From NCBI GenBank assembly GCA_965285935.1, contig OZ260666.1:62062001-62126000 (forward strand): a DNA stretch of 64,000 bases, in the 5' to 3' direction. The position numbers and the translations under genes were made by a program. Shown here in pieces: positions 1,260-35,987 of this stretch (within the stretch, counting starts at the first letter, position 1; each line of letters begins with the position of its first letter). The DNA is from Ophelia neglecta (Eukaryota). The notes under the pieces were generated by a model that saw only the letters and a program-made list of their open reading frames with translations, had not been told where the DNA came from and did not search any database.

Positions 1260-4200
1260 CCCTCTCTATCTGTTTGATGTAGTCTGCTTCTGTAGAGTTG
1301 TGACCATACTGAGGTCGGATGGTCATCACCATCAGTTTGTCGTCTCCCACAACCAGTGGAGTGATAGTGGTCATTGGTTGAGGTGTAGTATAAGGCCGAG
1401 GAGAGGTATTTGGGCCAGGGAGATATTGTCCTGTGACCCCAGCTGAGCTTGCAGAGATTACACTTCCCAGGTCAGTGAATGCTTGGCTGGCAGTTTCTAT
1501 CTCTGTAGTGGCATGTGGCCGATTGTCGATGGACATTGTATTAAAAGAGGGTGAGACTGCTGCTTCATAATCTGACCCAGCTGTCACAGTCTTCGTCTTA
1601 TATATTGTCTCATTACCACTCACAAGAGTTTCAGGTAGAAGAGGAACAGGAGAAGAGAGGGAAAGAAGGCCAGTAAGCATAGGGGAGGCAGTTAGAATGT
1701 CAGAGGACAAGTCAGGGGTAAAGGCGGAAGGTGAAATTGAAGAGCTCTCGAAGGATAAACTAGGAATGATAGGAAGCATATTGCTTTGTAGATGCATGGT
1801 TTTTGGATCTAAATAGGAGGCATTTTTTGGATTTAAACTGGGTGATTTCTGAATGGAATCATTACCAGTTGTCTTAGCGGGGGACCAAAGGTCAGAAGCA
1901 ACATAATTCATTGTTGAATGTGATGATTCCAAACTATAAGATGTTACTGGTGTGCTGGCCACAAGGTTACCTGTAGTCCATGTTATATTTAGCAGTTTTG
2001 TGACTTCCTTACTGGGGGGTACAGTTTGCATGAAATAAGATGTCAAATTGTCCAAATCGATTTGACTTATTCCAATACTTTGAAGACCAACACCACTGGA
2101 AACCACATGGGAACTAGCAAAATATTTCATTGACCCATGAGGCAGAAACTGGGTGTCATTGCTACTTACAGACGTTAATGAGGTGGTCTCTGGTAAGACA
2201 GTTGCACTGGCAAGTACTGGAGCTAGCGAGACCTTTGCAGACCAGGGCAAGTATATGCTTCTCTCTGACATTACTAGTAAGCTATGTTTAATGGAAGGTA
2301 ATGAACTTTCCCTTTCCAGTTGGGATCTATTTAATTGACTACCTCTCATAAATTGATATACAGAACTTTCTGTAGAATTTATAAACAAGGTTTTGTTTGC
2401 TGTTGGTAAGAAAGAGAATGATGCTGTGGGGACGTGTGGCACAGTGCTACTTATAGGTTTACTGAGAGACATACTTGGACTTAGACTAGGAAGTGAAGGT
2501 AAAGAATAATGTCCTGTCAGGAACATATCACTATAAAGGGGGGTGAATGTAGACACTGTATCAGTCATGGTGGGGGAAATGAAGCTACTATCAGAAAGGT
2601 AGATACTACTTGCATATATTGTCAATAATTCACTATCAGAAAAACCCACGCTTGAGTTGGACGAATATACTAAGCTTTCACTTTCAACTAAATTAATTGG
2701 AAGATTATCACTTGAACCAACTGAACTGTTATCAGAAATAAAAGAAAGGGAGAACAATGATTCTCGTGTTCTGTTAAAAAAAGAAAGGGAATCACTAGGA
2801 TAAACATTGGTGTTGTAGACTGCAGTAGGATGCATTGAGGTGCTGTCATTGAGTGTTGGCCTGAAAGACAGATAAGTGGAAAGGGTGATATCACTTGCAC
2901 TTGGAAATGCAATTACAGTGGGAATTGTGATTAAAGTTTCACTTATTGAAGGCAAAATAGTTGCACTGTCTGAGATAAATGATGGACTATTGCTAACATA
3001 TGAGAAAGATGGGGTGGTGCTACTTTCATATTCACTGTCACTTGTAACAGGAATCTGGGACTGGCTATCTGAAAGCAATGTAGAAATTCTTCCACTGGGA
3101 AATATTCCTATACTTTCACTGCTGGGTGAAAACAGGATCCTTTCATTGTTTACAAGTGAGGAGGAAAATGTCCACAAGTCTGTAGGCATCAAGGGTAATC
3201 TATATGATTGATTTCTGGACCAGTTTTTGCTTGAAGAGTATACCCATGTCTCCAATCCAAGGGGTGCTGTTGGTAGGATTGATGTAGGTAAACTGGCGAT
3301 TGGATCTGGGTAAAATGATATGCTCTCAATTGATATAGGAGTACTTGAAATTCTGTCTTTTATTGTAGCCTTCATAGACTGATGATCCTTTGTTGAAACC
3401 AAAACAACACTATCACTTAGAGATGGAAAAATTAAAATACCATCAATGCCTGCCAAACTATTATTAGACAATGGAAATATAGATGTATTGCTATTCTGAA
3501 TATCTGTTAATATTTTGCTGGGAAATATTGAACTACTTTTACTTTCTGGCAGGAGTGGAGTTGTCCACAGAGAATCATTTGGGTGGGCTAATGCCGTATT
3601 CCTAAATAAAGGTGATTTTGACATGATACCCTTTATTGTTGACACAAAAGACATACTTTCACTTGGAAGTAGATTGCCTTCAGAAAGGAGTCTGCTTGAC
3701 ATAGTTGGATACAGCAGCATGCTATCATTAATTGTGGGCACTAAAGTTGGGAAAATGTTGGTAATCATTGATCCAGTATTGTTAGCAGCTGGTAAACTAG
3801 GTAGGCTACTATTAAATGAAGACCTCCATTTAATGCTACCACTTGCTTCGGTTGTAAAGCTCTTGATAGAATTGGGAATTATGGTAAACATTGTATATGT
3901 GACATTGGGAGTAAAAAAGTGGTTGTAATTTGGTGAGAGGGAACTTGGCGGGGTCTTAAATGAAGGGGAAACAGTTTGCAGAATCATTGAAGGTAAACTG
4001 ATGGCTGGATCTGGATGAACTGACATGTTCTCATTAGAAATATGAAAGCTTGAGAAACTTTCTGGAATTGGGTCCACCAAAGATTGATTATCACTTAGTG
4101 ACATCCAATAACTTTCACTTTCAGTTGGTAAAATTGACAAGATGTAACTGTCAACCAAACTATCATAAGGCATTGGAGATAAAGCAGTAATGTCATTTGG

Positions 4201-7200
4201 AAAGCCTGTAATTGTTTCTATTGGATAAAATGACATGTAGACATTTTCTGAAGGGTGAATGGATGAACTTTCTAGTTGTGTAGGAACATTTAAGTGACTA
4301 TCAATTGGAAAAGCTGATAAATAACTGCCAGGCAGGGGAAATGTTGACGTGCTATCTGATGAAGTTGATGAAACTGTGAAGCTTTCTCTTTGAAATGTCA
4401 TTGTGCTATCATGGGAGTTGACCAGTTCTGACATATAATCACTTACAGTTGGAGACAGTAACCTGCTGTTATAAATTGTTGACAATAAAGGTGGATTAAC
4501 ACTTGAGAAAGCTGATGTAGAATTCCCAACAGATGGAAAAGCAGACAGGATGTCACTAAATGAAGATACCAATGGCATGTTATTACTTGTGTCTATTGGA
4601 AAGCTATTATTAGAAGTGGGAAGTGTGGTCATCATTTTATCTGTCACATTGGAAGAAAGAAAGTGGCTGTCATTTGATGAAGGGAATTGAGTCTCAAAAC
4701 CAGAAACTGTAGGCAAAATCATTGAAGCTAAACTGAGGCTGGGATCTGGAGACATTGACTTAATCTCATTTGAAATAGGAAAGCCTGACAGACTTTCGTT
4801 TGTAGGATCAGTCAATGACTTACCATAGCTTGGTGAAATCAAATAGCTTTCTATTTGGGTGGGAAAAATAACAATGCTTTCACTGTAGACTAAACTGTCA
4901 TAAGTTATTGTCAGTTTAGCAATACTGCTATCTGAAAGACCTGTCATTGTTTCACGCAAAAGTAACGGCACACTACTACTTTCTATAGGGAGAGTATATT
5001 GACTCTCATGCTGTGCTGGAAAATTTGAGACTCTGTTGATTGAAAAAGCTGACACACTACCATTAGACATAGGAAATGTGGACATGCTATCAGATATAAT
5101 AGTTGAAACTGACATGCCTTCACTAGGAAATGTCACGGTGCCATCATCTGAAGTGGTCAGGTTCTTAGTTGGAGCCATGGACACACTGCCATTAAATGTT
5201 GGTAATAAAGTGGGAGCCGAATTTGAGAGAATTGAGAGGGTACTGCTTACCGTTGGAAAAGCAGCAGACAGGCTATCACTAAAGGAAGCTATCATCATAT
5301 GCATGCTATCACTTAGCTCTATCGAAAAGTTCTTGCTAGACTTGGGAAGTAAGGTCATTATTGCATCTGTCACATTGGGAGAAGGAAGGTGGTTATCATT
5401 TGATGAAGAAATGCTCATGCTATCTTTGGATTCTGCTGAAAAACTTTTACTAGACATAGGGATTATGGTTTTATATGTCACACTGGAAGCAAGAAGTTGG
5501 ATATCATTTGATGAAGGAAAACTGAGAAGAGTCTCCTGTGCAAGAGAAACTGTGGATAGGATCATTGATGGCAATCGGAGGCCTGAATCTGGAACTGATG
5601 ACATGCTTTCATTTGAAATATCAATGTTGGACAGATCCTGTTTTCTTGGACCCGACAATGACTGGCTATACTGGGGTGAAATCAAATAATTAGTTCTTTG
5701 CGTTGGGAAAATTGGTGTGCTGCCTCTAACACCAAAACTATTACTAGACTTCAGAAATGTATATGCTAGAAGTGATTCGCTGTTTTTATCAGTATGTAAG
5801 GCATGGACGCTTTCACTCATTGAAGGTGACAATGGTAAGATTTCACTTGTATGCTTGGAAAAGCTATAACTGGCAGTTGCGTGTAGGGTCATCATCGAAT
5901 CTGTTGCATTTGGGGAAAGAAAAATACTGTTGTCTGATGAGAACACCAACTTTAGACTCTCACTTGGCATAAGTGGTGTGTTTTCATCAACTTTGGGGAA
6001 CAATGATGAACCATGCTTTTTTAACTGTAACACAGAGGAGCTATGAATTGTTACTTTGGGAACATTGGAAACACTGGTAGTTTCCAATGGCACAACAGAC
6101 TTATTGTAAGTTAGTTCAGATAATCCAGAGAAGCTTTGGCTTTGGAAAATAGAACTACTGGGGTCTGGGGGGAGAAAGTTAGTTTGGTTTTTGATAGATG
6201 TAGAAAAAAGTTCTGTACTGACTACATTGGACTGAGTGTTACTACTTGAAGCAATACTAGGTATATGATCAGTGGAAGAAAGAGGCACAAGACTAAAACT
6301 TTGCTGTAATACAGACAATGTGCTTTGGCTAAGTGACATGGTACTTTGAAATAATGAATTATTGCTTGAAAAGGGAGGCCTAGAAATTAAATCTATGGCT
6401 GAAGACAGGGATAATGGGATATTGTTTAATACTGTTGAATTTGAAACTGAAAATAAGGATAAATTAGCATTTATAGGCGCAGTAATGGAAAAGTTTTCAG
6501 TAGATAGTAACTGAGTGAAGCTATCTGTTTTAAACATAGCATTTGTATCCACAGCAGTCGGATACATTGACCTGCTAGTATAAGGTAAAGTGGGTAAAGT
6601 ATTAAGTGTCGGGATAAATTCAGATCTGTCGTTGGGTAACAATAAAAGACTATCTACTGACGATAAAATGGAAGGAATTGTGTAAGGGCTTCCACTGGCT
6701 AACTTCGAACGCCTGTTTATTGGACGGGAATAGTTAGGGCTTGTACTTGGTAATGGGGGCAGATTGGTTCCTAAGGGGGAATAATCCGGATTAATAGTTT
6801 GAAAATTAATTTGGTTCTCCAATAAGGTGGGGTGGTTAGGGCTCATATTGGACACAATCGAAAGACTGTCTGCTGAAGGGGATAAGTTAGTGGTGGTACT
6901 GGGCAATGCAGAAAAGTTATCTACTGAAGTGCCATAGTAAGGGATAGTGGTGGGTAACACAGAAAATGAATATACCAATGGGATATTTGTTGACATACCA
7001 TTATTTTTTTCTGTCTCAGATGATTTAAAAGCGGCTGGGAAAGCTGTTTCACTGACACGTTTTACTTCTGACTTACTCATTATTGGAGGGGCTAAATTCC
7101 ACGAGCTTCTGTCAATTAATGATGGATTGGAGAGACTGGCACTTTGGGTTGCACTGGGAGAGAATAGTGGACTCTCAGACGGAAATGCCACTAATACACT

Positions 7201-10200
7201 TTCCTTGTTAAAGGAGTTAATCTGGTTATTACCCGATGAATTCATATATACATCACTTTGGGCTGAGGAGATGGAAAAACCATCACTTTTAGGTTTTACA
7301 TCAGAAGAATTGGCCCCAAGTGGTGATCGATGAGAAAATAGATTGCTTTTCAAATAGATGGAACTAGAACCTGGAACTACTGTATTGCTCAAACGACCAG
7401 TGGATGGCTCAAACATGTTCACACTTGGTGAACTGTGAAGCAAACTATAGCTTTTGGAATTCCCCATGACGGATGCAAATACAAACAAGCTATCCCCAGG
7501 TGCAGAATTTGTAGTTAAACTACTAGCTTCTAAATACATATTGCTATTTATATCACTGGGAAAGGTTGGAATGCTATATCTCCAACTGGGTTGCTCATCT
7601 GAGAGAACAAAGCTGTCTGTTTGGATATTTAAACTGGTACGGATTTCCACAGAATGAATTAATGGCAATTTGGTTTCAATTCTTATAGGTTGAGATATAA
7701 TACTAGAAGATCTAGTCTCAAGTGTAAAGCTTTCTGATTCGGACAGTAAAATCGAATTGTACTCAGTTGAGTGAGCCATTGATGATGGCAGTACGCTTGT
7801 AGCTGACAAAGATGGATAATGTTCATCTGGTAACAAAAAGCTAGTCATGGATTCACTGTCCAAAAGAGGAGTTGTGTTATCACTAGTTGAAGAAGACATT
7901 GCTTTGATGGCTTGACTTAGTTGAAGATCGTCTGAAAGTGAGTCTCGCGGATTGAGTGACAAACCTTTAGGTAGATTGTAAGATGATGACACAACTTCTC
8001 TTTGAAAGGGAGACGAGGCACTTATCTCACTCGATTTTAGAATGCTTTGGATGGCTTCAGTGTTTAGGATTGTTGGTGTTAGGCTTGGTTCAAGTAAGCT
8101 AGACCCACTATTACTCCACTGAGAAGTCATATGTGGAATATTAGTTGAATTAATAGCCTTAGCTGTGTCATACTGTGAGCTATCAGACCCACCGTCGGCA
8201 AAGGAAGGACTTGGCATCCTGGTATTAAGAGAAATTCGAGATGCCAAACGTTCACTATGATGGGAGGAACGCAAGGCGCTATTCTCTACTAATTGTGAAT
8301 AGTCATGTAGGCCACCATTCAGGTTGGGAGGGATTTCGCTGGATATGTGGTGATCAGAAGTCTCCAGGTCATTCAAAGACGTTGAAAGTATTGCAGGTGA
8401 AATTGGTTTGGTAACTGACGACTGTATCACTTTGGTACTAGAAGAACTAGAAGAACCTAGAAGATGCATGCTTTCACGCTTCTCTTTGGTGCTTGAAGTT
8501 ACAGACAAATCAAATTTTGGTGGGACTGGAACAGCTCCTTTTGATATGCTGAACTGTATAAAGCGTTTAGTACGGTCAACACTTTTAATGATGGGAAAAA
8601 CAGATTGACTTGCCGCAGTGTGTCTATTTTCTCTGTGCGTTGAAAGTTTGTTGTTTTGTGTAGAAGACCGTGAATACATGTTTGTTGGAGTCCCAATAGG
8701 TGATGTTATCAAGGTCTCTGGAGAGGTGGGGAGTGGAGGAGTTCTAGTGGACGACAATTGGTAAAAACCTGCAGTTCCTTGTATGGACTGTGAAACAACG
8801 GAATCATTTACACCGACGGTTCTCAAAACAAACTTTTGAGATGATGCTGATGATACCAAACTTGCTATGGCCAAAGATAGTAATTTCATTCTACTAGAAG
8901 TGGAACTACCAGCCCAACTCAAACCATGTGATTTGGAGCTTGCAATACCCAGAAGACCAGTGGAGAGGATAGGGATCAAATTGGAACGCGGGTCCCACAT
9001 AGAAGACTCACCCCATGAAGAACTACTCAGGATCAGTTGCGATTTGCCAAGTTGAGGTAGGCCTTGTATGTCCGTAAATATTGGATTGATATCGCTAAAG
9101 AAATCATCGAATGCTGAAGTCTTTGGCGCCAACTTAGTTGACGCTGAAAAAAGGGAACCATATGGTGAGGGCAGGTGCTCTTGTACATTATCGCTGACAA
9201 TCTTTGACATCATCCTGGAGAGGTATCTACTATCTGCCAAATTGAAATGATTTTGTGATTTATGTGTGCCAACAGTACGGGGCTTATTGTTGCTTAAGTA
9301 TGTTACAGAAGGCCACAGGGTATTTGGAGGTTTTTTACTATGCCAGTTTGGCAAGGATACGAAATTATATCCACTTGCTAAAATCCCAGAGATTTTCGTG
9401 GTGGGTATATCAGAAATGCTATATTGATCCGTCTCACTGTGCTTTGCATCATCGTACATACTAAAGAGCACTGGTTTAGAAGTAAACGACCCTTCACTCC
9501 ACATGTCTCCACGTAAATCAGTTACAAATGTTGCAAGTAGTATAGACATGGTGCCAAGAGGGGCAGATTGATGCATTATACTAGATTTGGATGATGGTAC
9601 CTTTTTAATTGAACTGTATGCGTATATTTCACTAGATTTGCGCGGCCGAAAACCATTTAAGACAGGTCTGGATGGATGTTTTATTCCGGTTTGTGTTGCC
9701 TCCATACCACCAACGGGTCGTATACTAGACTGTGTTACTGTCTTGCTCTCAATGAGCCAGGACGCGGAGGCATTAATGAATTGGGTTGATGATATATTTA
9801 TAACAATTCCAGATGGAGTTACCATAGCGGATTGTGACGGGCCATGACGTAGGTCGAGGCTAGATGTGAACTCCCAACTCTCTGGAAACGACGTAAATTT
9901 TTCACTCGGAAATAATGACATCATGGAATTTTTGGAAGGGAGACTGGATTTTTCGTGAAGTTGGAAATGAACATTTGAGGGACTATCGCGTAGAAAAGCT
10001 GATGCTGTACCGCTAGACAGAGTAAACATGGGAATGCCATCAGATATACTTGTAAAAACTGGTACGCCTTCACCTGGAAACACCATTATGCTATCATTCG
10101 AAGTGAGAAGGTCTGACACGTAGTCATTCAGAGTTGGAGACAGTGACATGTTGTTATTAAATTTGGACAATAATGTTGGAGCAATATTTAAGACATCAGA

Positions 10201-13200
10201 TGCAGCATTGCTAACAATTGGATTACCAAAACTGCTAGCTGGTAACGAAGGCGCAAAGGTCATGAAATTAGTTAGGTCAGAAAAATTATTACTAGAAGTG
10301 GGAATTATGGCCATGGTTATAGCTGTCACATCGGTAGAAAGAAAGTCATTGTTTCTTGATGAGAGGTAACTTAACTCAGTCTCAGACCCATTGGAAACTG
10401 TGGCCAGCATCATTGATAGAATATCAAAGATTGGATCCTTGTAAATTGAAAACGTCTCATTTAATATAGGTAAGTTTGACAGACTTCGGCCTATTGTGTA
10501 AACCAAAGACTGACTGTGCAAAGTAGGAATCAAATCACTTTTCATTCGAGAGGGAGAAAAGGACATGCTTTCACTATGCACAAAACTTTCATAAGGCAAT
10601 AGATATTTAGATGTACTGCTGCCTGAAATACCAGCCAATGTATTACTCGGAGCTACTGGCATAATCAAATTCGTTGATAGGGGAGTGAATAGACTGTTAC
10701 GTCGAGTCAGATTATTAAAGAAAATATCGCTTTGAAAACCTGAAACCCTACTGCCAGAAAGAGGATATAATGATATGTTATCAGGCATGGTCGGAAAACT
10801 TGTAATGTCTCTTTTTTTAAAGGTCATTGTGCTCTCATCTGAAAATATCAGGTTTGACCTATTATCCCTCAATGGTGGAGCGAGCAACATGCTGTCATTT
10901 AATGTTGACAATAAAGAAGGAGCAATATTTGAGAGAAGTGATGCAGTATTTCTAAATGTTGGAAAAGCTGGAAGGCTAGTTTTTATTGAAGGGACAAACA
11001 GCATGATTTTATTTGATTCTGCTAACAATCTATAGCTATAAGTCACACTGGGAGAAAGGGAATCGATGTCCATTGATAATTGGAAACTGGACAGAGTCTC
11101 AAATCCAAGCGAATTTTCTCCGATCACATCCAATAACGAATGGATATTCCTTGTTGAAATCAAATAACTTTCCATTGGTGTGGGGGAAATCGGCATTTGT
11201 TCACTATACACATTCACACTTGAAATCTGAAAGTTGGAGAAACTTTCTTGCATAGGGTCCCCCAACGGTTGATCATCACTTGGTGATATCAAATAACTTT
11301 CACTTTCAGTTGGTAAAATCGACAAGATGTAACTGTCAACCAAACTATCATAAGGCATTGGAGATATAGCAGTAATGCCATTTGGAAAGCCTTTAAATGT
11401 TTCTATTCGATAAAATGACATGATGACATTTTCTGAAGGGTGAATTGATGAACTTTCAAGTTGTGTAGGAACATTTAGGTCACTATTAATTGGAAAAACT
11501 GATAAATAACTGCCAGACAGTGGAAATGTGGACGTGCTATAAGATGAAGTTGGTGAAACTGTGAAGCTTTCTCTTTGAAATGTCATTGTGCTATCATGGG
11601 AGTTGACCAGTTCTGACATATAATCACTTACAGTTGGAGACAGTAACCTGCTGTCATAAATTGTTGACAATAAAGGTGGATTAACACTTGAGAAAACTGA
11701 TGTAGAATTCCCAACAGATGGAAAAGCAGACAGGATGTCACTAAATGAAGATACCAATGGCATGTTATTACTTGTGTCTATTGGAAAGCTCTTATTAGAA
11801 GTGGGAAGTGTGGTCATCATTTTATATGTCACATTGGAAGAAAGGAAGTGGCTGTCATTTGATGAAGGGAATTGAGTCTCAAAACTAGAAACTGTAGGCA
11901 AAATGATTGAAGCTAAACTGAGGCTGGGACCTGGAGACATTGACTTTATCTCATTTGAAATAGGAAAGCTTGAGAGACTTTCGTTTATAGGATCAGTCAA
12001 TGACTTACCATAGCTTGGTGAAATCAAATAACTTTCTATTTGGGTGGGAAAAATCACAATGCTTTCACTGTAGACTAAACTGTCATAAGTTATTGTCAGG
12101 TTAGCTATACTGCTATCTGAAAGACCTGTCATTGTTTCACGCAAAAGTAACGGCATACTACTACTTTCTATAGGGAGAGTATATTGACTCTCATGCTGTG
12201 CTGGAAAATTTGAGACTCTGTTGATTGAAAAAGCTGACACACTACCATTAGACATAGGAAATGTGGACATGCTATCAGATATAATAGTTGAAACTGACAT
12301 GCCTTCACTAGGAAATGTCACGGTGCCATCATCTGAAGTGGTCAGGTTCTTAGTTGGAGTCATGGACACACTGCTATTAAATGTTGGTAATAAAGTGGGA
12401 GCCGAATTTGAGAGAATTGAGAGGGTACTGCTTACCCTTGGAAAAGCAGCAGACAGGCTATCACTAAAGGAAGCTATCATCATATGCATGCTATCACTTA
12501 GCTCTATCGAAAAGTTCTTGCTAGACTTGGGAAGTAAGGTCATTATTGCATCTGTCACATTGGGAGAAGGAAGTTGGTTATCATTTGATGAAGAAATGCT
12601 CATGCTATCTTTGGATTCTGCTGAAAAACTTTTACTAGACATAGGGATTATGGTTTTATATGTCACACTGGAAGCAAGAAGTTGGATATCATTTGATGAA
12701 GGAAAACTGAGAAGAGTCTCCTGTGCAGGAGAAACTGTGGATAGGATCATTGACGGCAATCGGAGGCCTGAATCTGGAACTGATGACATGCTTTCCTTTG
12801 AAATATCAATGTTGGACAGATCCTGTTTTCTTGGACCCGAGAATGACTGGCTATACTGGGGTGAAATCAAATAATTAGTTCTTTGCGTTGGGAAAATTGG
12901 TGTGCTGCCTCTAACACCAAAACTATTACTAGACTTCAGAAATGTATATGCTAGAAGTGATTCGCTGTTTTTATCAGTATGTAAGGCATGGACGCTTTCA
13001 CTCATTGAAGGTGACAATGTAGGGTGTAGGGTCATCATCGAATCTGTTGCATTTGGGGAAAGAAAAATACTGTTGTCTGATGAAAACACCAAATTTAGAC
13101 TCTCACTTGGCATAAGTGGTGTGTTTTCAATAACTATGGGGAACAATGATGAACTGTGCATTTTTAACTGTAACACAGATGTGCTATGAATTGAAACTTT

Positions 13201-22200: not shown

Positions 22201-25200
22201 ACTTATCTTACTCGATTTTAGAATGTTTTGGATAGATTCAGTGTTTATGATTGTTGATGATAGGCTTGGTTCAAGTAAGCTGGGCCCACTATTAGTCGAT
22301 TGAGAAGTCATATGTGGAATGTTAGTTGAATTAATAGCCTTAGCTGTGTCATACTGTGAGCTATCAGACCCACCGTCGGCAAAGGAAGGACTTGGCATCC
22401 TGGTATTAAGAGAAATTCGAGATGCCAAACGTTCACTATGATGTGAGGAATGCAAGGCCCTATTATCTACCAATTGTGAAGAGTCATGTAGGCCACCGTT
22501 CAGGGTGGAAGGGATTTCGCTGGATATGTGATGATCAGACGTCTCCAGGTCATTGAAAGACGTTGAAAGTATTGCAGGTGAAATTGGTTTGGTAACTGAC
22601 GACTGTATCACTTTGGTACTAGAAGAACTAGAAGAACCTAGAAGATGCATGCTTTCACGCTTCTCTTTGGTGATAGAAGTTACAGACAAATCAAATATTG
22701 GTAGGACTGGAACAGCTCCTCTTGATAAGCTGAACTGTATAAAGGGTTTGGTACGGTCGACACTTTTAGTGATGGGAAACACAGACTGACCTGCTGCAGT
22801 GTGTCTACTTTCACTGAGTGTTGAAAGTTTCTTGTTTTGTGAAGGAGACCGTGAAAACATGTTTGTTGGCGTCCCAATAGGTGATGTTATCAAGGTCTCT
22901 GGAGAGGTGGGGAGAGGAGGGGTTCTAGTGGACGACAATTGGTAAAAACCTGCAGTTCCTTGTATGGACTGTGAAACAACGGAATCATTTACACCGACGG
23001 TTCTCAAAACAAACTTTTGAGATGATGCTGATGATACCAAACTTGCTATGGCCAAAGATAGTAATGTCATTCTACTAGAAGTTGAACTACCAGCGCAACT
23101 CAAACCATGTGATTTGGAGCTTGCAATACCCAGAAGACCAGTGGAGAGCATAGGGATCAAACTGGAACGCGGGTCCCACATAGAAGACTCACCCCATGAA
23201 GAACTACTCAGGATCAGTTGCGATTTGCCAAGTTGAGGTAGGCCTTGTATGTCCGTAAATATTGGATTGATATCGCTAAAGAAATCAACGAATGCTGAAG
23301 TCTTTGGCGCCAACTTAGTTGACGCTGAAAAAAGGGAATCATATGGTGAGGGCAGGTGCTTTTGTACATAATCGCTGACATTCTTTGACATCATCCTGGT
23401 AAGGTATCTACTATCTGCTAAATTGAAATGATTCTGTGATTTATGTGTGCCAACAGTAAGGGGTTTATTGTTGCTTAAATATGTTACATAAGGCCACAGG
23501 GTATTTGTAGGTTTTTTACTATGCCAGTTTGGCATTGATACGAATTTATATCCACTTGCTAAAAACCCAGAGATTTTCCTGGTGGGTATATCAGAAATGC
23601 TATATTGACCCGTCTCACTTTGCTTTGCATCATCGTACATACTAAAGAGCACTGGTTTAGAAGTATACGACCCTTCACTCCATATGTCTCTACGTGAATC
23701 AGTTACAACTGTTGCAAGTAGTATAGAGATGGTGCCATGAGGGGCAGATTGATGCATTATACTAGATTTGGATGATGGTACCTTTTTAATTGAACTGTAT
23801 GGGTATACTTCCCTGGATTTGCGCGGCCGAAAATCATTTAAGACAGGGCTGGATGGATGTTTTATTCCGGTTTGTGTTGCCTCCATACCACTAACGGGTC
23901 GTATACTAGACTGTGATGCTGTCTTGCTCTTAATAAGCCAGGACGCGGAGGCATTACTGAATTGGGTTGATGATATATTTATAACAATTCCAGATGGGGT
24001 TTCCATATCGGATTGTGACGGTCCCTGAAGTAGGTATGACGTGAACTCCCAACTCTCTAGAAACGCCGTGAATTTTTCACTCGGAAATAATGACATTAAT
24101 AAATTTTCGGAAGGGAGACTGGATATTCCGTGAAATTGGAAATGAACATTTGAGGGACTATCACGAAGAAAAGCTGATGCTGTACCGCTAGACAGAGTAG
24201 ACATGGGAATGCCATCAGATATACTTGTAAAAACTGGTACGCCTTCACCTGGAAACACCATTATGTTATCATTCGAAATGAGAAGGTCTGACACGTAATC
24301 ATTCACAGTTGGAGACAGTGACATGCTGTTATTAAATTTGGACAATAATGTTGGAGCAATATTTAAGACATCAGATGCAGCATTGCTATCAATTGAATTA
24401 CCATAACTGCTAGCTGGTAAAGAAGGCGCAAAGGTAACGATATTATTTAGGTCGACAGAAAAATTATAACTCGAAGTGGGAGTTATGGCCATGGTCATAA
24501 CTGTCACATCCGTAGAAAGAAAGTCATTGTTTCTTGATGAGAGGTAACTTAACTCAGTCTCAGACCCATTGGAAACTGTGGCCAGCATCATTGATAGAAA
24601 ACCAAAGATGGGATCCTTGTAAATTGAAATCGTCTCATTCAATATAGATAAGTTTGACAGACTTCGGCCTATTGTGTAAACCAAAGACTGACTGTGCATA
24701 GGAGGAATCAAATCACTTTTCATTCGAGAGGGGGAAAAGGACATGCTTTCACTCTCCGCAAAACTTTCATAAGGCAATAGATATTTAGATGTACTGCTGC
24801 CTGATATACCAGCCAATGTATTACTCGGAGCTACTGGCATAATCAAATTCCTTGATAGGGGAGTGAATAGACGAGGCAGATTATTTAAGAAAATATCGCT
24901 TTGAAAACCTGAAACCTTACTGCCAGAAAGAGGATATAATGATATATTATCAGGCATGGTCGGAAAACTTGTAATGTCTCTTTCTTTAAAGGTCATTGTG
25001 CTCTCATCTGAAAATATCAGGTTTGACCTATCATCCCTCAATGGTGGAGCGAGCAACATGCTGTCATTTAATGTTGACAATAAAGAAGGAGCAATATTTG
25101 AGAGAAGTGATGCAGTATTTCTAAATGTTGGAAAAGCTGGAAGGCTAGTTTTTATTGAAGGGACAAACAGCATGATTTTATTCGATTCTGCTAACAATCT

Positions 25201-28200
25201 ATAGCTATAAGTAGGAACTATAGTAACCATTATATCTGTAACACTGGGAGAAAGGGAATCGATGTCCATTGACAATTGGAAACTGGACATAGTCTCAAAT
25301 CCAAGCGAATTTTCTCTGATCGCATCCAATAACGAATGGCTATTCCTTGTTGAAATCAAATAACTTTGAATTGGTGTTGGGGAAATCGGCATTTGTTCAC
25401 TATAAACGTTCTCATTTGAAATCTGAAATTTGGAGAAACTTTCATGTATAAAGTCCACCAACGATTGCTTATCATTTGTTGACATCAAATAAATTTCCCT
25501 TTCAGTTGGTAAAATCGACAAGATGTAACTGTCAACCAAACTATCATAAGGCATTGGAGATATAGCAGTAATGCCATTTTGAAAGCCTGTAATTGTTTCT
25601 ATTGGATAAAATGACATGATGACATTTACTGAAGGGTGAATCAATGAATTTTCAAGTTGTGTAGGAACATTAAAGTGATTGTCAATTGGAAAAGCTGATA
25701 AATAACTGCCAGACAGGGGAAATGTTGACGTGCTATTAGATGAAGTTGGTGAAACTGTGAAGCTTTCTCTTTGAAATGTCATTGTGCTATCATGGGAGTT
25801 GACCAGTTCTGACATATAATCAGTTACAGTTGGAGACAGTAACCTGCTGTCATAAATTGTTGACAATAAAGGTGGATTAACACTTGAGAAAACTGATGTA
25901 GAATTCCCAACAGATGGAAATGCAGCCAGGACGTCACTAAATGAATATACCAATGTCATGTTATTACTTGTGTCTATTGGAAAGCTCTTATTAGAAGTGA
26001 GAAGTGTGGTCATCATTTTATCTGTTACATTGGCAGAAAGGAAGTGGCTGTCATTTGATGAAGGGAATTGAGTCTCAAAACCAGAAACTGTTGGCAAAAT
26101 CATTGAAGCTAAACTGAGGTTGGGATCTGGAGACATTGACTTTATCTCATTTGAAATAAGAAAGCATGACAAACTTTCGTTTGTAGGATCAGTCAATGAC
26201 TTACCATAGCTTGGTGAAATCAAATGACTTTCTATTTGGGTGGGAAAAATCACAATGCTTTCACTGTAGACTAAACCATCATTAGTTATTGTAAGTTTAG
26301 CAATACTGCTATTTGAAATACCTGTCATTGTTTCACTCGAAAATAACGGCACTCTACTACTTTCTATCGGGAAAGTATATTGACTCTCATGCTGTGCTGG
26401 AAAATTTGAGAGACTGTTGATAGATAAAGCTGACACGCTACCATTGGACATAGGAAATGTGGACATGCTATCAGATATGATAGTTGAAACTTCACTTGGA
26501 AATGTTACGGTGACATCATTTGAAGTGGGCAGGTTCTTAGTTGGAGACGTGGACACACTGCCATTAAATGTCGGTAATAAAGTGGGAGCCGAATTTGAGA
26601 GAATTGAGAGGGTACTGCTTACAGTTGGAAAAGCAGCAGACAGGCTATCACTAAAGGAAGCCATCGTCATATGCATGCTATCACTTAGCTCTTTCGAAAA
26701 GTTCTTGCTAGACGTGGGAAGTAAGCTCATTATTGCATTTGCCACATTGGGTAAAGGAAGGTGGTTATCATTTGATGAAGAAATGATCATGCTATCTGTG
26801 GATTCTGCTGAAAAACTCTTACTAGACGTAAGGAGAATGATTTTATACGTCACACTGGAACCAAGAATTTGGATATCATTTGATGAAGGAAAACTGAGAA
26901 GAGTCTCCTGTGCAGGGGAAACTGTGGACAGGATCATTGATGACAATTGGAGGCCTAAATTTGGAACTGATGACATGCTTTCATTTGAAATATCAATGTT
27001 GGTCAGATCCTGTTTTCTTGGACCCGAGAATAACTGGCTATACTGGGGCGAAATCGAATAATTAGTTCTTTGCGTTGGGAAAATTGGTGTGCTGCCTTCA
27101 ACACCTAAACTATTACTTGGCATTAGAAATGCATATGTGAGAAGTGATTCACTGTTTTTATCAGTATTTAAGGCATGAATGCTTTCACTCATTGAAGGTG
27201 ACAATTCCAAGATTTCACTTGGATGCTTGGAAAAGCTATAACTGGCTGTTGCGTGTAGGGTCATCATTGCATCTGTTGCATTTGGGGAAAGAAAAATGCT
27301 ATTGTCTAATGAGAACAGCAACTTTAGACTGTCACTTGGCATAAGTGGTGTGTTTTCATCACCTATGGGGAACAATGATGAACTGTGCATTTTTAACTGT
27401 AACACAGATGAGCTAGGAAATTCTACTTTGGGAACATTGGAAACACTGGTAGTTTCCAATGGCATAACAGACTTATTGAAATTTTGGTCAGAGAATCCAG
27501 GGATACTTTTGCTTTGGAAAATAAAACTACAAAGTTCTGGGGGGAGTAAGTTTGTTTGGTTTTTATTAGATGTAGAAAAAAGTTCTGTACTGACTAAATT
27601 GGACTGATTTATACTACTTGAAGCAATACTAGATATATGATCAGTGGAAGAAAGAGGCACAAGGCTAATACTTTGCTTTAATACAGACAATGTGCTTTGG
27701 CTAAGTGACATGGTACTTTGAAATAATGAGTTGCTTGAAACGGGAGGCCTAGAAATTAAATGTACGGCTGAAGACAAAAAGAATGGGATATTGTTTAATA
27801 CTTTTGAATTTGAAACTGAAAATAAGGACAAATTAGCATCTACAGGCGGAGTAATGGAAAAGTTTTCAGTAGATAGTAACTGAGTTAAGCTATCTGTTTT
27901 AAACATAGCATTTGTATCCACAGCATTCGGATACATTGACCTGCTATTAGGTAAAGTTGGTAAATTGCCTAAAGTATCATTTGCAGAATGGTAAATTGGT
28001 GGAGTCCCATTTGGCAAAATAGTTATGCTATCACTTCCAGAGGGGTACAACAATGAATCAGTCGGAGATACAAAGTCCGAGATGGATTCAGGCCTTATAG
28101 GCGAGTTAGTGATGAGTGAGGCAGAAATAGTATTAAGTGTAGGTATAAATTCAGATCTGTCGTTGGGTAACATAAAAAGACTATCTACTGACGATAAAAT

Positions 28201-31200
28201 ATAAGGAATTGTGTAAGGGCTTCCACTGGCTAACGTCGAACGCCTGTTTATTGGACGGGAATAGTTTGGACTTGTACTTGGTAATGGGGGCAGACTGGTT
28301 CCTAAGGGGGAATCGTCCGCAATAATAGTTTGCAAATCAGTTTGGTTCTCCACTAAGGTGGGGTGGTAAGAGCTCATACTGGACACAATCGAAAGACTGT
28401 CTGCTGAAAATGATAAGTTAGTGGTGGTACTGGGCAATGCAGAAAAGTTATCTACTGAAGTGCCATAGTTAGGGATAGTGGTGGGTAATACAGAAAATGA
28501 ATTCACCAATGGGATATTTGTTGACATACCATTATTTTTTTCTGTCTTAGATGATTTAAAAGCTGATTTACTGACACTTTTTACTTCTGACTTACTCATT
28601 ATTGGAGGGGCTAAATTCCAAGAGCTTCTGTCAATTAATGGTGGATTGGAGAGACTGACACTTTGGGTTGCACTGGGAGAGAATAGTGGACTCTCAGACG
28701 GAAATACCACTAATAAACTTTCCTTGTTAAAGGAATTCATCTGGTTATCACCCAATGAGTTCATATATACATCACTTTGGGCTGAGGAGATGGAAAAACC
28801 ATCACTTTTATGATTTAAATCAGAAGAATTTGCCCCAAGTGGTGATCGATGAGAAAAAAGATTGCTTTTCAAATAGATGGAACTAGAACCTGGAACTACT
28901 GTATTGCCCAAACGACCAGTGGATGGCTCAAACATGTTCATACTTGGTGCAATGTGAAACAAACTATAGCTTTTGGAATTCCCCTTGACGGTTGCAAATA
29001 CAAACAAGCTATTCCAAGGTGCAGAATTGGTAGTGAAAGTACTATCTTCTAAATACATATTGCTATTTACATCACTGGGAAAAGTTGAAATGCTATGACT
29101 CCAACTGGGTTGCTCATCTGAGAGAACAAAGCTGTCTTTATGGATCATTAAACTATAACTGCTTTCCACAGAATGTATTAATGCCAATTTGGTTCCACTT
29201 TTTACTTGTTGAGCTATGATACTAGAAGAGCTAGTCTCAAGTGTAAAGCTTTCAGATTTGGAAAGTAAAATCGACTTGTTCTCATTTGAGTGGTTCATTG
29301 ATGATGGGCGTATACTTGTAGCTGGCAAAGATGGGAAACGTTCACCTGGTGACAAAAAGCTAGTCATGGAGTCACTGTCCACAAGAGGATTTGTGTTATC
29401 CCTGGTTGAAGAAAACATTGCTGCTATGGCTTGGCTTAGTTGAAGATTATTTGAAAGCGAGTCTCGAGGATTGGCTGAAAAACTATTAGGTAGTTTGTAA
29501 GATGAAAACAAACCTTTACTTTGAAAATGAGACGAGGCACTTATCTCACTCGATTTTAGAATAGTTCGCGTAGATTTAGTGTATATGATTGTTGATGTTA
29601 AGCTTGGTTCAAGTAAGCTGAACACACCAAAAGTCGTTTGAGAAGTCATATGTGGAGTGTAAGTTGAATTAGTAGCCCTAACTGTGTCATACTGTGAGCT
29701 ATCAGACTCAACATCGGCAAATGAAGGACTTATTTGCACCCTGGTATTAAGAGAAATTCGAGATGCCAATCGGTCATTATGATCTAAGGAATGCAAGGCG
29801 TTATTTTCTACTGATTGTGACGAGTCAGGTTTTTTAAGTGGGCCACTATTCATCGCGGGAGGAATTTCGCTGGATATGTGGTGATCAGAAGTCTCCAGGT
29901 CATTCACAGAAGCGGAAATTATTGCAGGTGAAACTGGTTTGGTAACTGACGACTGTATCACTTTGGTACAAGAAGAACTAGAAGAACCTAGAAGATGCAT
30001 GCTTTCACGCTTCTCTTTGGTGATAGAAGTTACAGACAAATCAAATATTGGTAGGACTGGAACAGCTCCTCTTGATAAGCTGAACTGTATAAAGGGTTTG
30101 GTACGGTCGACACTTTTAGTGATGGGAAACACAGACTGACTTGCTGCAGTGTGTCTATTTTCACTGAGTGTTGAAAGTTTCTTGTTTTGGGTAGAAGACC
30201 GTGAATACATGTTCGTTGGAGTCCCAATAGGTGATGTTATCAAGGTCTCTGGAGAGGTGGGGAGTGGAGGGGTTCTAGTGGACGACAATTGGTAAAAACC
30301 TGCAGTTCCTTGTTTGGACTGTGAAACAACGGAATCATTTACACCGACTGTTCTCAAAACAATCTTCTGAGAAGATGCTGATGATACTAAACTTGCTATA
30401 GCCAAAGATAGTAATGACATCTTTCTAGATGTTGAGCCAGCCCAACTCAAACCATGTGATTGGGAGCTTGCAACACTCAGAAGACCAGTGGAGAGGATAG
30501 GGATCAAACTGAAACTTGGGTCCCAAAAAGAAGACTTTTTCCGTGAATAACTACTCACGATCACTTGGGATTTTCCCTGTTGAGGTAAGCCTAGTATGTC
30601 GGTAAATATTGGATTGATATCATTAAGAGAATCGACAAATCCTGAAGTGTTCGGCACTTCTGACATACTCATTAATGAAGGGGCTAAGTACTTCCAGCTT
30701 CTCTCAATTCCTGATGGATTAGGGAGACTATCACTGGGATATATTATGACACTGTCAGTTGAAGAGGAGTAGGATAGATGACTGTTTTTCTCAGAGGAAA
30801 ATTCCAACGATAAACTTTCACTGTCAGATAAATATATCGGTCTGTCATTGGGAGAGCTTGAACTTACATCCCTGTGGGTTGGGAATATTGAAAATTCCCC
30901 ACAACTGATGACCATCTTTGACATTATGCTTGGGTGGAATTTACTATCCAATGAATTTGAATATTCCTGTAGTATATGTGTACCTAAACTATGGGATGTA
31001 GCTAGAATGAATAGTTTGTTTGTATTCTCTATCTCTCTTGAATCAGAGGCCCTAGTTACGTTTATGAGAAGAGACACAGTCCCTTTGGAATTGGGGACCT
31101 GTGACTTCAGTTTAGCAGACACATTGGAAATGAGCAACAGAGTCAAAGGTATATCAAGCATTGTAGAACTATGCTGCATTATTGTTGAAATAACAAAATC

Positions 31201-34200
31201 AGTGGCATTGGGTATTTGTGAAATTTCAATGACTGACCTGATTGTTTTCTGTAACTTTGAATCATGATTGGCATACAAACTGGTGCCCATGGTGTTGGAA
31301 GTTTGGGAAATGGAATTTGCTGAACTTTGTTGCACTGAAATTAAACCTTTAGCACTATAGATACTGTGCATGTATGTGACTGAACTTAAAGATAATAAGG
31401 GTTTCTGCCTATACATTGGGACAGTGGTTCTATTTGCCTGCATTGCAGAAAAGAAGGGCCTTGTGGAACTTTTAATTTCTGGATGAAATGTGTGAGCACT
31501 GATGGAACTGGATGTTTGTGAAGAAACCACAATAGACGAGGATGGTACTATAAATGTCATACTTTTCTTCGAAATTGTTCTGGCAATGGTTGCATAGCTA
31601 TTACCTCCAGACAACCTAGAACTTAATAACTTGGATACATCACCTGAAGAAGTGAATATGTTTGAAGTAGTAAAATTTCTCGGTGATGTAAACTTGGAAT
31701 GTAAAGCAGGACTTGAACTTTTTCTGTTCCTGTACAGGATTATTATACTGGATGTATGAGAATTAACTTGATTTCTTTTACCATCAGTGTTAATAAGAAC
31801 CTTCCTGTTGGGATGATTAATACCACTGTGCATACTGGACGTGAATTTTGTAACAGAATTCAGATCTAGTTTTACTCTTTTAGCTAAGGCACTGTCAGTT
31901 CTCCTACTCGGCACACTTACAGGTAAACTATATGTATGTGAAGATGAATTGATGGCAGCTCTGTCATCAGATAATTTGTGCAAGGTACTGGATATAGATG
32001 ATAGTGTCATCAGCACACGTTCTTTTGGATTCACTGACATAGTGGAAATGGGGGCTCCAGTCTCAGACAATGAACTAGTAAACATTACAGATGTTAGGAA
32101 TTTTGGGGACCTTTGCACATAAGTAGAAGTATGGATAAATGCATTATTATACAGTGCCTTCGAAGTGCTAGTAGAGGACAATATGGTTTTTCTATATGTT
32201 TCAGCTTCAGACAAACTCAGTGCAGAATCAACAACACCTGTGTTGAAAATTGGCTGGAAAGGAAAGGATGGAGCCAGAGCTACTTGAAAAACTGAAGAGG
32301 CAAAGTTTCTTTGATTTTTAATATTATTATTTTGTTCGACAACTGTTGATTTGACAATGTCACTTTTGTTGGATAGTGACCTCTCACTTTTTGTGGGTAT
32401 AATAGCTGCTATTAAGGTCTTGGAATCTAGGACAGTGGACAAACTAGGAGTGGGAACATGATTTTCTTCCAAAAAGTCAGATGTATATAAATCATTTACA
32501 ACTGAAGGATCAACAAGAGAGATGAAATTGCCTGTGATGGTAATCCTTTGTTTTGATTCCTTAGAAACAAGGGAAGCTGTTAAGGAGATTATTGTTGGCT
32601 CTGATTTTGTCTGGACTTGTTTCAGCCACAGGGATAGCTCCATTTCAAATGGCTCAGTGTTTATCACAAATGAACTGTTATTTTTTATCATAGAGACCTC
32701 GGAAAATGGGATGGATGTTTTGTCATGTGACAAAATGTCTTCATACTCATTAAATTCAGGTAATGCTGACCTTTCACTTAATAAGGGTGGGCTTCCAGGC
32801 AAGTTGGTATTAATTGTTAAGTGGATAGAATTTGAAATGAATGTTCTATTTAAACCAATCCATATTATTTCTGTCCCAGCTGTCCCAGTCAAGTTCGAAA
32901 ATGATAACATGTAACTGGGCACGCTTGGGATGCTGGGGTCTTGTGACCAAAACAAGCCATTGGATATATTGTGAAGACTTTCTTGACCATGATTCAATAG
33001 GAAAAGAGAATGAGAAGGAAGATGTACAAACCCAGAAGTGAGGATAATGTGTGACTGGTTCTTCGTTATGATTTTACGTTGGTCTGCAACACTGGTTTTA
33101 GTGGCATTAGTGATTTTGGTGGGCCAAACATTTTCTCTGCTCATGCCAGGTGATATGGTGTGTAGGACCTCAATATTCAGTGGTACAGTTTTTAATTTCA
33201 AAGAAGACACAGTGGAAGGAAACTCCTTTACTTTATGTGTTCCTAATGGTTCTCCGTCGCTAATAACCACTGAATTAGGTCCCTCTTGAATGTTGCTACC
33301 CCATCCTTTGCTCCTTGAAATTCTGCTATTAACAACAGAAATTGTTATCTGAATGTTTGGTTGCAGGCTGGGTGTATCTACAATGCTTGACACATAGTGT
33401 TCCTGTATTAAAAATGAGGACTTAGTGGTTATGCTGTCAACTGTCATTCCATTTCCCTGGGTGAGAGACTGCAGATAAATAAGTCTGGAGTTGCTGAAGG
33501 GACTTTTGGCCGCATCATAGTCTGGAAGGTCCACATTATTGATTTCCATATTTCTCACATAATTGTATGTAGCTGAAGTTTGCTCCCTTGCAGCTTGTGT
33601 GTAACTGATAACAGCTGTTTCAGAGAGGACAGAGTTAGCCACTGTATAAATATAATTGCTATTATCAGTCTGTAAAAATCCTGTGGTGGTTTGACTGCTG
33701 AGGATGTTGACCTTCTCCAATTTTGATATTAAATCCACAGAATAAATGTAACCTTTCAAGTGACTGTCCATGTTTGAAAAGTTTGGCCAGATTTCTGTCC
33801 TGAAGCCTGTCCCCTCAAAGTTCCCACTATCAGTGGGAGATAATGGGGAGGTGATAAAGTGCTTTGCAATGCCATGCATTGTGTCTCCCTCTTGCTTAGA
33901 AAATAAGCCTCCTGTAATTGAAATCAATGGAATAGATGACTTCCTACAGCTTGATATTATCTCATCATTCACTTTGACATTACTTATAAAGCTGGTGGAT
34001 ATTAATTTACTGAGACTAGTTGTGTTATTACCCCGGATAGCCAATGACTTGATGTCAGCTATGCCTATTCTGTGGTTGCTTCCATGTTTGTGAGAAGTTG
34101 AGTTGAAGGAATTGATTTTGGTGTTCATTTCTCTGGTCACTGGGGTAGGTGTTTCCAATTCAAATTTGACAGCAACATGGAAACTCTGAGTTTTAACCCT

Positions 34201-35987
34201 TTTATTGAATCCCAACAAGCCACTTTCCAGGCTAGTAGATTGTGATGTGTAAAAGTGAATGTCATTTGGAGTTCTGCTTTGAAATCCACCAGGTCCTGGT
34301 GTAGCTGCTGTGAGGTATGGTGTTACAGTATCCTTTAGTACAGTGTTCACCATATATAAATTGGGGATAGTTGTGTCCTTTCTTTTGTTCAATTCGGAAA
34401 AAGATGATTTCGCAATGATTACTGAATTGGATGTGGAGTGCATTGACAAATCAAATGTCTTTGAAAGTCTCCAATTTACTTGCAATATTGGGATTTCTGA
34501 TATCTTAAATGAACTCCCAAGGAAACTTGATCGTAGCAGGATTTTGAATGATGAAACATCAGAGTTTTCCTTTTCATTATCAAGGACTATTGCAGCAGCA
34601 GACTGTGCAAATGCAAATTGAAAACTGTTATCAGTCTTGAAATGCAAATCTCCATGTGGAACATAGGACTCAAGAATGCCATCCATATTGGTTGAGAAGG
34701 AAAATTCATAAAATGGCTTTTTTGTGCTCAAATCTTTGTGTTCTTCAAGTTTAGACACCATGAATGCAATATGCAAGTGATTTGGGTCACTTTGATTTGC
34801 TAAATGACTATTTGCATTGAAAGAACTTGACAACATTATTCTTTCAGTTGTTACCTTGGAACTATATATCGCATCACTGGGTGAATTAAACTCTCCTGAA
34901 TTGGCCATAATCATAGTGAAAGTGGTGTCATTGGCACGTTCCTGCTGGGAAGATGATGCTGCTTCATCGTGAGGTTGGAACACATTGCTAAATGTCCTAG
35001 ATTCCTGCATTTTCCGGATGGCCTGAGGATAGTCCAACACATGTGTAGGATTAACATTGCTCTTCTGGATGAAGACACTGGATGTTTTTTGTGATATTGT
35101 GCCATCTGCAAATCCCTTTAATTGGTGGGTGCTTTCAAAAGTAAGTCCCTTCTTATCTCTTGGTTTAGGGTTTTCTGCTATTACTATTTTACTTTCATGT
35201 TCTGCAAGAGTCTGTGTATAAGTGTATGCATACTCATGCACCTCGGTAGTAGCAACCTTCAAAAGTGCATAGTCATCAACTGTGTTTGCATCCACATGTC
35301 CCAAAGTCAAAGAAAAATATATGAAGGCTGCTATCATGAATACTGAAGATACTGAGGTCGGAGGCCTTCTACTTTTAGAGGCAACAGACAAGGACGATAC
35401 AAGACAAGATATAACACATTGTATCACAAAAGGTAGCATTAGCACAATATAAGGTAAGAGCTTTAGCATTATACTTTTGGTGCGAACTTCAAATTTTGAA
35501 CAGTTGAATTTTGTCTCCCCAATGTGAATCATCTTTTCCTGCAATGTTGCTTCTCTTCGTGACTTCCTACATGCTCCTTTGGTGTGCAGTTTCTTTCCTC
35601 CTACCTCAGGCGTGCTAGAAATTCCTTCAGCATTGAGAAATTGCATTTCAGCCTGCATAATTGTTTCCACACAGGCATTGTTTCCTGTTTCCTTTGAGCA
35701 GGCAGTTTTAAATTTATCTGAAAATTCCAATTGATCTTGGACTGGATAACAGGAGGTGGACTGCAACCATGAGCTTGCCATTTTCAATGAAATTTGAGTC
35801 AGCCATGCCACGCTAAATTTGTAAATGCAACATAACACTCCTTTCAACCTCAGATACCCAGAGTTTGTTACTCCAGAGTCCTGTGGCATCAGTTTTAGGG
35901 CAGGGGTGGTTCTTCCAATGCCTTCTTGTCCAGTGATAATTGCTCTGAGAATAGCTGGTCTCACTCCTACAAATTGGTCTTCATTAC
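1260..35987 (-). CDS. Giant coding exon (34,728 bp, ~11,576 codons) of a KIAA1549/UPF0606-like protein; Ser-rich mucin-like ectodomain
   Basis: The ORF 1219..35964 has no stop over 11,581 codons. Minus-strand acceptor ttttttgtttcag|GTAATGAAG (exon starts 35987; the frame stays open to it: xG-N-E-D-Q-F-V-G-V-R-P). Donor AGGG|gtgagt (exon ends 1260). Both junctions are phase 1. The ORF-track start at 35964 is GTG; the first in-frame ATG in the exon is 35889. Hydrophobic segments follow ATG 35469 (MLKLLPYIVLMLPFVIQCVISCLV) and ATG 35337 (MIAAFIYFSLTLGHVDA, signal-peptide-like). Confidence 0.85.
4040..30625 (-). repeat. Coding tandem macro-repeat, ~3.7 copies of a 7.07-7.35 kb unit inside the giant exon
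   Basis: The marker peptide DINPIFTDI recurs near 30610, 23260, 16155 and 9080. Homologous ORF-track features are offset by 7350 (30030/22680), 7107 (23048/15941) and 7074 (15941/8867). The fourth copy is partial and ends near 4040. Confidence 0.97.

Follow-up and report, generated by a model that had tools for sequence, protein, structure and literature searches.

A 34.7-kb candidate coding exon in Ophelia neglecta: a predicted Ser-rich, mucin-like ectodomain with a putative KIAA1549-like membrane anchor

Background

In several tethered mucins of vertebrates (MUC12, MUC16, MUC4, MUC3A, and MUC17), the greater part of a type I membrane glycoprotein is specified by a single giant exon with repeats, and in MUC1, MUC4, and MUC16 the ectodomain is held non-covalently after cleavage. 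The KIAA1549-type membrane proteins are the second group of interest here; to our knowledge, their function is not known even in humans. The present study concerns a gene on the minus strand of the Ophelia neglecta genome that can be compared with both, and whose largest exon lies within the window, i.e., the whole stretch of 64,000 nucleotides (nt) that was analysed (C9:62,062,001-62,126,000, C9 denoting contig OZ260666.1). Positions are given as window coordinates unless they are prefixed with C9 or L.

With a probability of roughly 0.7, the locus contains a real, single giant exon of a tethered Ser-rich glycoprotein with a KIAA1549-like anchor. The host gene would then be a single-copy gene of ~50 kb (C9:62,048,312-62,097,987, minus strand), of whose span 34.7 kb are one exon. 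Expression and splice use of the gene are what we infer from its genomic sequence. What is new is the combination of a KIAA1549-like anchor, a ten-fold larger ectodomain, and a 7.1-kb macro-repeat within one uninterrupted exon.

Open frame and borders of the giant exon

The window is free of assembly gaps (0 N) and contains only one open reading frame (ORF) of at least 400 amino acids (aa), situated at 1219..35964 on the minus strand and 11,581 aa in length. Between positions 1260 and 35987, one of the three sense frames is free of stops, whereas the other two carry 694 and 1,149. Over the ORF, the five alternative frames contain between 346 and 1,148 stops each, and their longest open run amounts to 228 aa; with stops this frequent, chance is excluded as the origin of a frame that stays open over 11,500 codons. 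At the acceptor (35987), a pyrimidine tract is followed by CAG/GT, the slash marking the border, and the frame opens exactly there, while the donor at 1260 reads G/GTGAGT. A stop-free frame of 34,728 bp with splice sites at both ends, in phase with two downstream exons, had been put forward in a preliminary description of this DNA, and all of these elements were found in the sequence.

Concerning the immediate surroundings of the acceptor (window 35975-36000), it reads CAG/GTAATG, such that its AG is directly abutted by a donor-like GT. The GC skew of the plus strand is steadily positive (0.13-0.245) over window positions 2000-34000 and falls to ~0 at both borders, and the outline of the exon can be traced from it alone; the positive skew reflects the C-rich sense strand, in which C is the commonest second-position base (32.5%).

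In the N-terminal part of the exon, in-frame Met codons are situated at aa 26, 62, 145, 166, 176, and 210. Since several Met codons as well as the sole hydrophobic N-terminal segments (Table 1) lie inside it, the giant exon may be the first coding exon, and it probably holds a signal sequence or signal anchor. Upstream of Met166, 165 codons are open; with stops at 6-10% of codons, chance is an unlikely cause of so long a run, and the probable origin of translation is therefore either Met26 or Met62 within the exon, or else an exon farther upstream.

Composition of the predicted product

The translated ORF contains 20.8% Ser, 9.9% Leu, 8.4% Thr, and 7.2% Pro; hydrophobic residues account for 29% of the exon product, and only 16 of the 11,581 residues are Cys, nine of them before aa 188. 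Past the hydrophobic segments, the predicted ectodomain comprises 11,342 aa (1.23 MDa) with 3,338 Ser/Thr residues and 190 NxS/T sequons. Pfam searches covering aa 1001-5400 of the ORF as well as 1,000 aa at either end recovered no domain, and a phmmer search of 1.84 billion representative proteins with the last 920 aa of the exon gave no match. The ~225-aa sub-repeat described below, modeled in AlphaFold2 with 15 full copies as alignment, yielded a mean pLDDT (predicted local distance difference test) of 32.6 and almost no secondary structure, and the ectodomain is accordingly predicted to be intrinsically disordered.

The usual criterion for a PTS (Pro/Thr/Ser) domain is a content of ~40% or more Ser plus Thr (S+T) with at least 5% Pro over 100 aa. 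It is reached in none of 1,125 windows of 100 aa, whereas S+T is at least 30% in 544 of them and ~29% overall. The term mucin-like, as used in the preliminary description, therefore holds loosely: the ectodomain is best called a Ser-rich disordered mucin-like polymer, not a classical PTS mucin.

Downstream exons and cytoplasmic tail

The giant exon is followed in phase by two short exons, and the next one, exon 4, lies 1,235 bp past exon 3 (Table 1). Exon 4 encodes 19 residues, then a Leu/Ile-rich transmembrane (TM) helix, and finally a basic stop-transfer stretch. Together, these short exons would provide a juxtamembrane module of ~150 aa that includes a furin-type RRRKR site; in the sequenced sample, an Arg>Lys variant at window position 1010 leaves a basic RxKR-type site in this region. 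The product of more than 1.2 MDa with a link to the membrane that had been proposed earlier is thus borne out as a coding exon under selection (see below), corresponding to ~1.23 MDa without glycosylation and in phase with juxtamembrane and transmembrane exons.

Beyond exon 4, further open segments on the minus strand begin right after pyrimidine-tract AGs in phase 0; the borders of these tail exons are provisional. One of them contains a tandem array of the 9-aa unit RPDSYTTRG/D, for which no Pfam match was obtained and which, being rich in Tyr, Ser, and Thr, may act as a repeated phosphorylation or docking motif. Two consecutive tail exons have counterparts, 80% identical in amino acid sequence, on a genomic contig of 1.9 kb from another species (P0002/L017), and the terminal exon is 62% identical to a gene call of a third assembly (P0001/L016, ENA ERZ25069296), whose contig ends 21 bp upstream of that exon. 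At the level of these sequences, the tail is conserved between species, and its conserved motifs suggest the presence of cytoplasmic partners. When exon 3, the motif exon, and the terminal exon were searched against the own genome, each recovered nothing but itself, and the ESM Atlas contained no usable match to the terminal exon or the motif exon. In the third assembly, the orthologous terminal exon is followed, ~9 kb downstream, by a UBA-domain-like ORF (L016:9479-9724, minus strand, and 10468-10528) in opposite orientation.

Relationship to KIAA1549

The locus was compared exon by exon with KIAA1549 and with PF12877 (formerly DUF3827), the Pfam profile of the KIAA1549/UPF0606 family. In a genome-wide search, this profile detected colinear exons at C9:35.81 Mb and nothing at the giant-exon locus. 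In the canonical gene detected there, a Ser-rich, Cys-free exon of 1,112 codons is accompanied by exons with the RRKR site, with a match to profile positions 197-266, with the TM helix, and with the C-terminus, and the PF12877 matches of the gene cover profile positions 136-189, 197-266, 258-285, 481-514, and 620-675. Since it is this gene that the profile picks, it is, on the profile evidence, the KIAA1549 orthologue, and the giant-exon gene is not. Another match to PF12877, at C1:51.11 Mb, was rejected as a family member, as it represents a spurious TM match in a leucine-rich repeat protein.

Direct comparison of the giant-exon gene with the canonical gene revealed probable homology with a moderate signal. 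The strongest similarity is that of the cytoplasmic motif exons (AGQFEHVAKMSRL vs. AGEFENVAKLSRV; BLASTP E=6e-6, shuffle p=3e-5), where 9 of 13 residues are identical between the two genes, the motif being conserved also in the orthologue on P0002. Weaker similarities are found between the RRRKR and RRKR exons (p ~0.01-0.02), between exon 3 with IFYVSKDD and the canonical exon at profile positions 197-266 with IYYLVEDD (E=0.011, p ~0.01), between the TM exons (p ~0.02), between VLDEAFPL and LLDQAFAL (p ~0.055), and among the C-terminal 60 residues, which include LLRAIREEL and LLDSVREEL, respectively (p ~0.02). Fisher combination of the six colinear exon pairs results in p=3e-6, and of the five cells that reach p<=0.02 in the matrix of 12 x 9 exons, four are situated on the colinear diagonal. 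The distances between the features agree as well: the RRKR site and the TM helix are 86 aa apart in the giant-exon gene and 84 aa in the canonical gene, the RRKR site and the YY-DD motif 30 and 27 aa, and this motif and the TM helix 56 and 57 aa.

Thus, the giant-exon gene shares with the KIAA1549 family a Ser-rich, nearly Cys-free ectodomain whose single large exon ends in phase 1 (as does the Ser-rich exon of the canonical gene), an RRKR site ~85 aa before the TM helix, an exon with I-[FY]-Y-x-x-x-D-D, a single TM helix, and a long tail with AGxFExVAKxSR, LLDxAFxL, and a C-terminal REEL, colinear with the PF12877 gene of the genome. It differs from the KIAA1549 gene in the ectodomain, which is ten times longer (11,575 vs. 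1,112 codons) and contains the 7.1-kb macro-repeats, and from the family in the ~14 copies of RPDSYTTRG/D in its tail. The general layout of a Ser/Thr-rich ectodomain, a single TM helix, and a long tail is likewise found, yet it discriminates little because this architecture is generic for membrane mucins. Based on the colinear exon similarities and the conserved spacing, the anchoring module (juxtamembrane part, TM helix, and tail) is likely a divergent paralogue of the KIAA1549/UPF0606 gene of this genome. In this form, i.e., as a paralogue rather than as the orthologue, the membership in the KIAA1549 family claimed in the preliminary description is supported, though only indirectly.

Several observations weigh against this interpretation, most of which would instead fit a lineage-specific gene of tethered mucin-like type without kinship to KIAA1549, with the shared layout caused by convergence and the remainder by chance short matches. 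The PF12877 match that had been expected earlier was not obtained, even at E<=10, in the tail of the giant exon, in exons 2-4, or in nine downstream exon candidates (gathering score of the profile, 24 bits), whereas the C-terminal exon of the canonical gene reaches 27.7 bits by itself. Exon by exon, the assignment thus fails by the refuting condition that the preliminary description had named. For the C-terminal motif alone, hhalign gives a probability of 1%, which is not significant; searches of the own genome with exons of the giant gene do not reach the KIAA1549 locus, and tblastx of the downstream DNA against that locus recovers only a shared interspersed repeat. In an all-against-all comparison of ORFs, a junk pair scored equal to the motif pair, and the exon pairs tested were partly picked after inspection. 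The introns of the two genes match only roughly, one phase being different and the first intron being shifted by ~25 residues, and furin sites in stalks are common among shed membrane proteins. With regard to the gene as a whole, the S+T content of the ectodomain is below that of classical mucins, residue constraint is very weak (see below), and the sequencing runs that contain the locus are three DNA runs from one sample, whose contigs cover introns. The assumption of an unrelated gene, however, does not account for low p-values that cluster on the colinear diagonal (combined p 3e-6), for a cytoplasmic motif with such identity over 13 residues, or for feature spacing that agrees within 1-3 residues, and we regard it as unlikely.

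The Ser-rich exon of the canonical gene, used as the query of a word-based search, had no matches. The interspersed repeat mentioned above is ~200 bp long, possibly similar to short interspersed nuclear elements, and is found at L008:9452-9673, L013:1579-1795 and 2873-3068, and L012:8677-8861; being common to the downstream region of the giant gene and the KIAA1549 locus, it constitutes the only tblastx link between them.

The connection of the giant exon with its anchor depends on the donor at 1260. If this donor were unused or only partly used, the main product would be secreted, as the frame does continue to a stop at 1219-1221, 13 codons beyond the donor. But the donor is strong, the three successive exons after it keep compatible phases up to a textbook TM helix, and exons still farther downstream have conserved counterparts in other species, so that a mainly secreted product appears very unlikely.

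Repeat structure and coding constraint

About 77% of the giant exon is a tandem array, in which self-BLAST recognizes 3.7 copies of a 7.1-kb unit. The array spans ORF nt 5310-31942, corresponding to window positions 4023-30655 (26.6 kb), in the order partial U0, U1, U2, U3, and partial U4, and the units are 87-97% identical at the DNA level. Synonymous divergence (dS) is 0.03 between U2 and U3, 0.077 between U1 and U2, and ~0.135 between U0 and the remaining units. Each unit holds a block of ~1,100 aa composed of older sub-repeats of ~225 aa, of which a hidden Markov model detected 30 full or partial copies belonging to four types; these are 32-45% identical between types and ~65% identical at the DNA level, and are still in frame. 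Tandem Repeats Finder, with periods up to 500, found no repeat in the exon, the actual units being much longer. The present size was most likely gained by recent tandem amplification of a 7.1-kb unit that already contained the ~225-aa repeats. As the duplication leading to U2 and U3 is so young, its dS being ~twice the divergence within the sample, it suggests that length change is ongoing, and the 7.1-kb unit is possibly polymorphic in copy number among individuals.

The young age of this duplication might also be taken as a sign that the length of an otherwise real exon is inflated by the assembly, with at least one 7.1-kb unit (e.g., U2 or U3) representing a falsely duplicated haplotype. 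The contigs of the three DNA runs differ from the reference by ~1.5%, and the difference of ~3% between U2 and U3 is only about twice that value; moreover, the short-read contigs collapse in the repeat, such that unit count and order rest on the assembly. On the other hand, the window is free of gaps, the units are set apart by distinct in-frame indels, and U4 exceeds the unique flank in k-mer depth by a factor of ~1.5-6 in each of the three runs, as would fit a multi-copy array. A false duplication thus has a similarly slim chance as a secreted main product, and an exon shorter by one unit would still measure 27.6 kb.

Concerning coding constraint, the ratio of nonsynonymous to synonymous divergence (dN/dS) between the macro-repeat units is 0.66-0.75, and all 12 indels among the aligned DNA of U1, U2, and U3 have lengths divisible by three. 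Among random substitutions in the ORF, 3.46% would create a stop; the ~490 substitutions separating these three units should therefore include ~17 stops, and none was observed. Contigs from the same sample carry an in-frame insertion of 12 nt at window position 2907 and, at 5834-5881, a skip of 46 nt with four replacement letters, i.e., a net in-frame deletion of 42 nt, which may derive from another repeat copy. The single-base variants listed for the unique C-terminal part comprise ten nonsynonymous, two synonymous, and no stop-creating changes. Because no stop has arisen, all indels between the units are in frame, and dN/dS is ~0.7, the alignments indicate that selection acts on the reading frame and on the general composition, whereas individual residues are hardly constrained, as expected for a disordered glycopolymer. 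That the ORF is a silent relic, or a pseudogene too recent for its frame to have decayed, would agree with the weak residue constraint (dN/dS ~0.7, ten to two variants), but is scarcely credible in view of the missing stops, the 12 in-frame indels, the old sub-repeats that remain in frame, and tail exons conserved across species.

Table 1. Positions of the giant coding exon, its parts, the exons downstream of it, and the canonical KIAA1549/UPF0606 gene
Feature	Position	Strand	Remarks
Giant coding exon	1260..35987	-	34,728 bp; frame stop-free from the acceptor onward
Hydrophobic segments (the only two of the ORF)	35287..35469	-	aa 166-196 (163-197 in a slightly wider delimitation) and 203-226; probable signal peptide or signal anchor
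Non-repeated N-terminal ectodomain	30656..35286	-	~1,540 aa; Ser climbs from 14% to 23%
Macro-repeat U0, partial	27576..30655	-	3.1 kb; oldest copy, dS ~0.135 vs. others
Macro-repeat U1	20463..27575	-	7,113 bp, 2,371 aa
Macro-repeat U2	13342..20462	-	7,121 bp, 2,374 aa; 97% identical to U3, dS 0.03
Macro-repeat U3	6204..13341	-	7,138 bp, 2,379 aa
Macro-repeat U4, partial	4023..6203	-	2.2 kb
Sub-repeat block, example	16888..20232	-	four full and three partial ~225-aa copies
Equivalent sub-repeat blocks	24028-27345, 9814-13116, 3331-5973	-	same block as at 16888..20232
Non-repeated C-terminal ectodomain	1260..4022	-	920 aa
Exon 2	949..1055	-	35 codons and a split codon; AG/GT borders, in phase; furin-type RRRKR at 997-1011
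Exon 3	683..835	-	51 aa, motif IFYVSKDD; AG/GT borders, in phase
Exon 4 (TM)	L006:9250-9447	-	1,235 bp past exon 3; phase 0/0; AG and GTAAGT borders
Putative cytoplasmic repeat exon	L006:7045-7731 = C9:62,059,045-62,059,731	-	~14 tandem copies of 9-aa RPDSYTTRG/D
Terminal exon	L007:6312-6779	-	closes with a stop; 62% identical to P0001/L016 (ENA ERZ25069296)
Canonical KIAA1549/UPF0606 gene	C9:35,806,226-35,820,624 (loci L011-L013)	+	26 Mb from the window, same contig

Elsewhere in the window, ORFs of 90-200 aa at 59,151-63,292 (plus strand) had been guessed by eye to be remnants of a retroelement (reverse transcriptase); Pfam gave no match at E<=0.01, and this assignment was dropped.

Comparison with tethered mucins

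The organization of the giant exon is similar to that of the tethered mucins in that one large exon bears tandem repeats (here 3.7 x 7.1 kb with nested units of ~225 aa) and supplies the bulk of what would be a type I membrane glycoprotein. In being long and degenerate, its repeats resemble those of MUC16. Processing near the membrane, as in the tethered mucins of vertebrates, is represented in the giant-exon product by the predicted furin-type site only. There are also fundamental differences: No SEA, EGF, or NIDO/AMOP/vWD domain was found with Pfam in the exon tail and, exon by exon, in exons 2-4; the product contains only ~29% S+T and as much as 29% hydrophobic residues; the repeat unit comprises 2,370 aa, whereas those of the tethered mucins range from tens to 156 aa; and sequence homology is lacking, as judged from the last 920 aa searched against the representative proteins.

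Concerning size, the preliminary description had considered the exon exceptional by reference to MUC16 (~21.7 kb). This benchmark is outdated, as alleles of the human MUC12 exon with a variable number of tandem repeats (VNTR) encode 4,677-23,080 aa, and VNTR alleles of MUC4 reach 27,843 bp (PMC13345508). Judged by these alleles, the product is comparable in size to MUC12 and MUC4, and the 34.7-kb exon lies within the known range of tethered mucins.

If the gene is expressed as predicted, the N-terminal signal or anchor would send the Ser-rich chain to the lumen, and heavy O- and N-glycosylation of this chain would be likely. Cleavage at the RRRKR site would release the ectodomain or leave a non-covalent tether, such that the ectodomain could be shed or else be held as in MUC1, MUC4, and MUC16. 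The product might then constitute a polymer of micrometre scale at the cell surface or in shed form, i.e., in glycocalyx or mucus.

Conclusions

The known size range of mucin exons is not broken by the exon described here. If expressed, its product, with ~1.23 MDa before glycosylation, would nevertheless rank among the largest polypeptides that a single exon has been described to encode in an invertebrate. In-frame amplification of a 7.1-kb unit would have made a modest Ser-rich exon ten times as large within a short span of evolution, with only the frame being conserved. Concerning annotation, a procedure based on Pfam would miss the relationship to KIAA1549, and gene predictors may fragment or skip exons of this kind.

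For the poorly understood KIAA1549 family, the giant-exon gene would mean an extension to mucin scale. It is conceivable, although rather doubtful, that KIAA1549-type proteins serve in general as membrane anchors for glycopolymer ectodomains of tunable length, of which the giant paralogue would be a natural extreme. If this is true, the ten-fold enlarged paralogue could reveal the role of the ectodomain, e.g., as a spacer of the periciliary or epidermal glycocalyx or as a shed mucus polymer.

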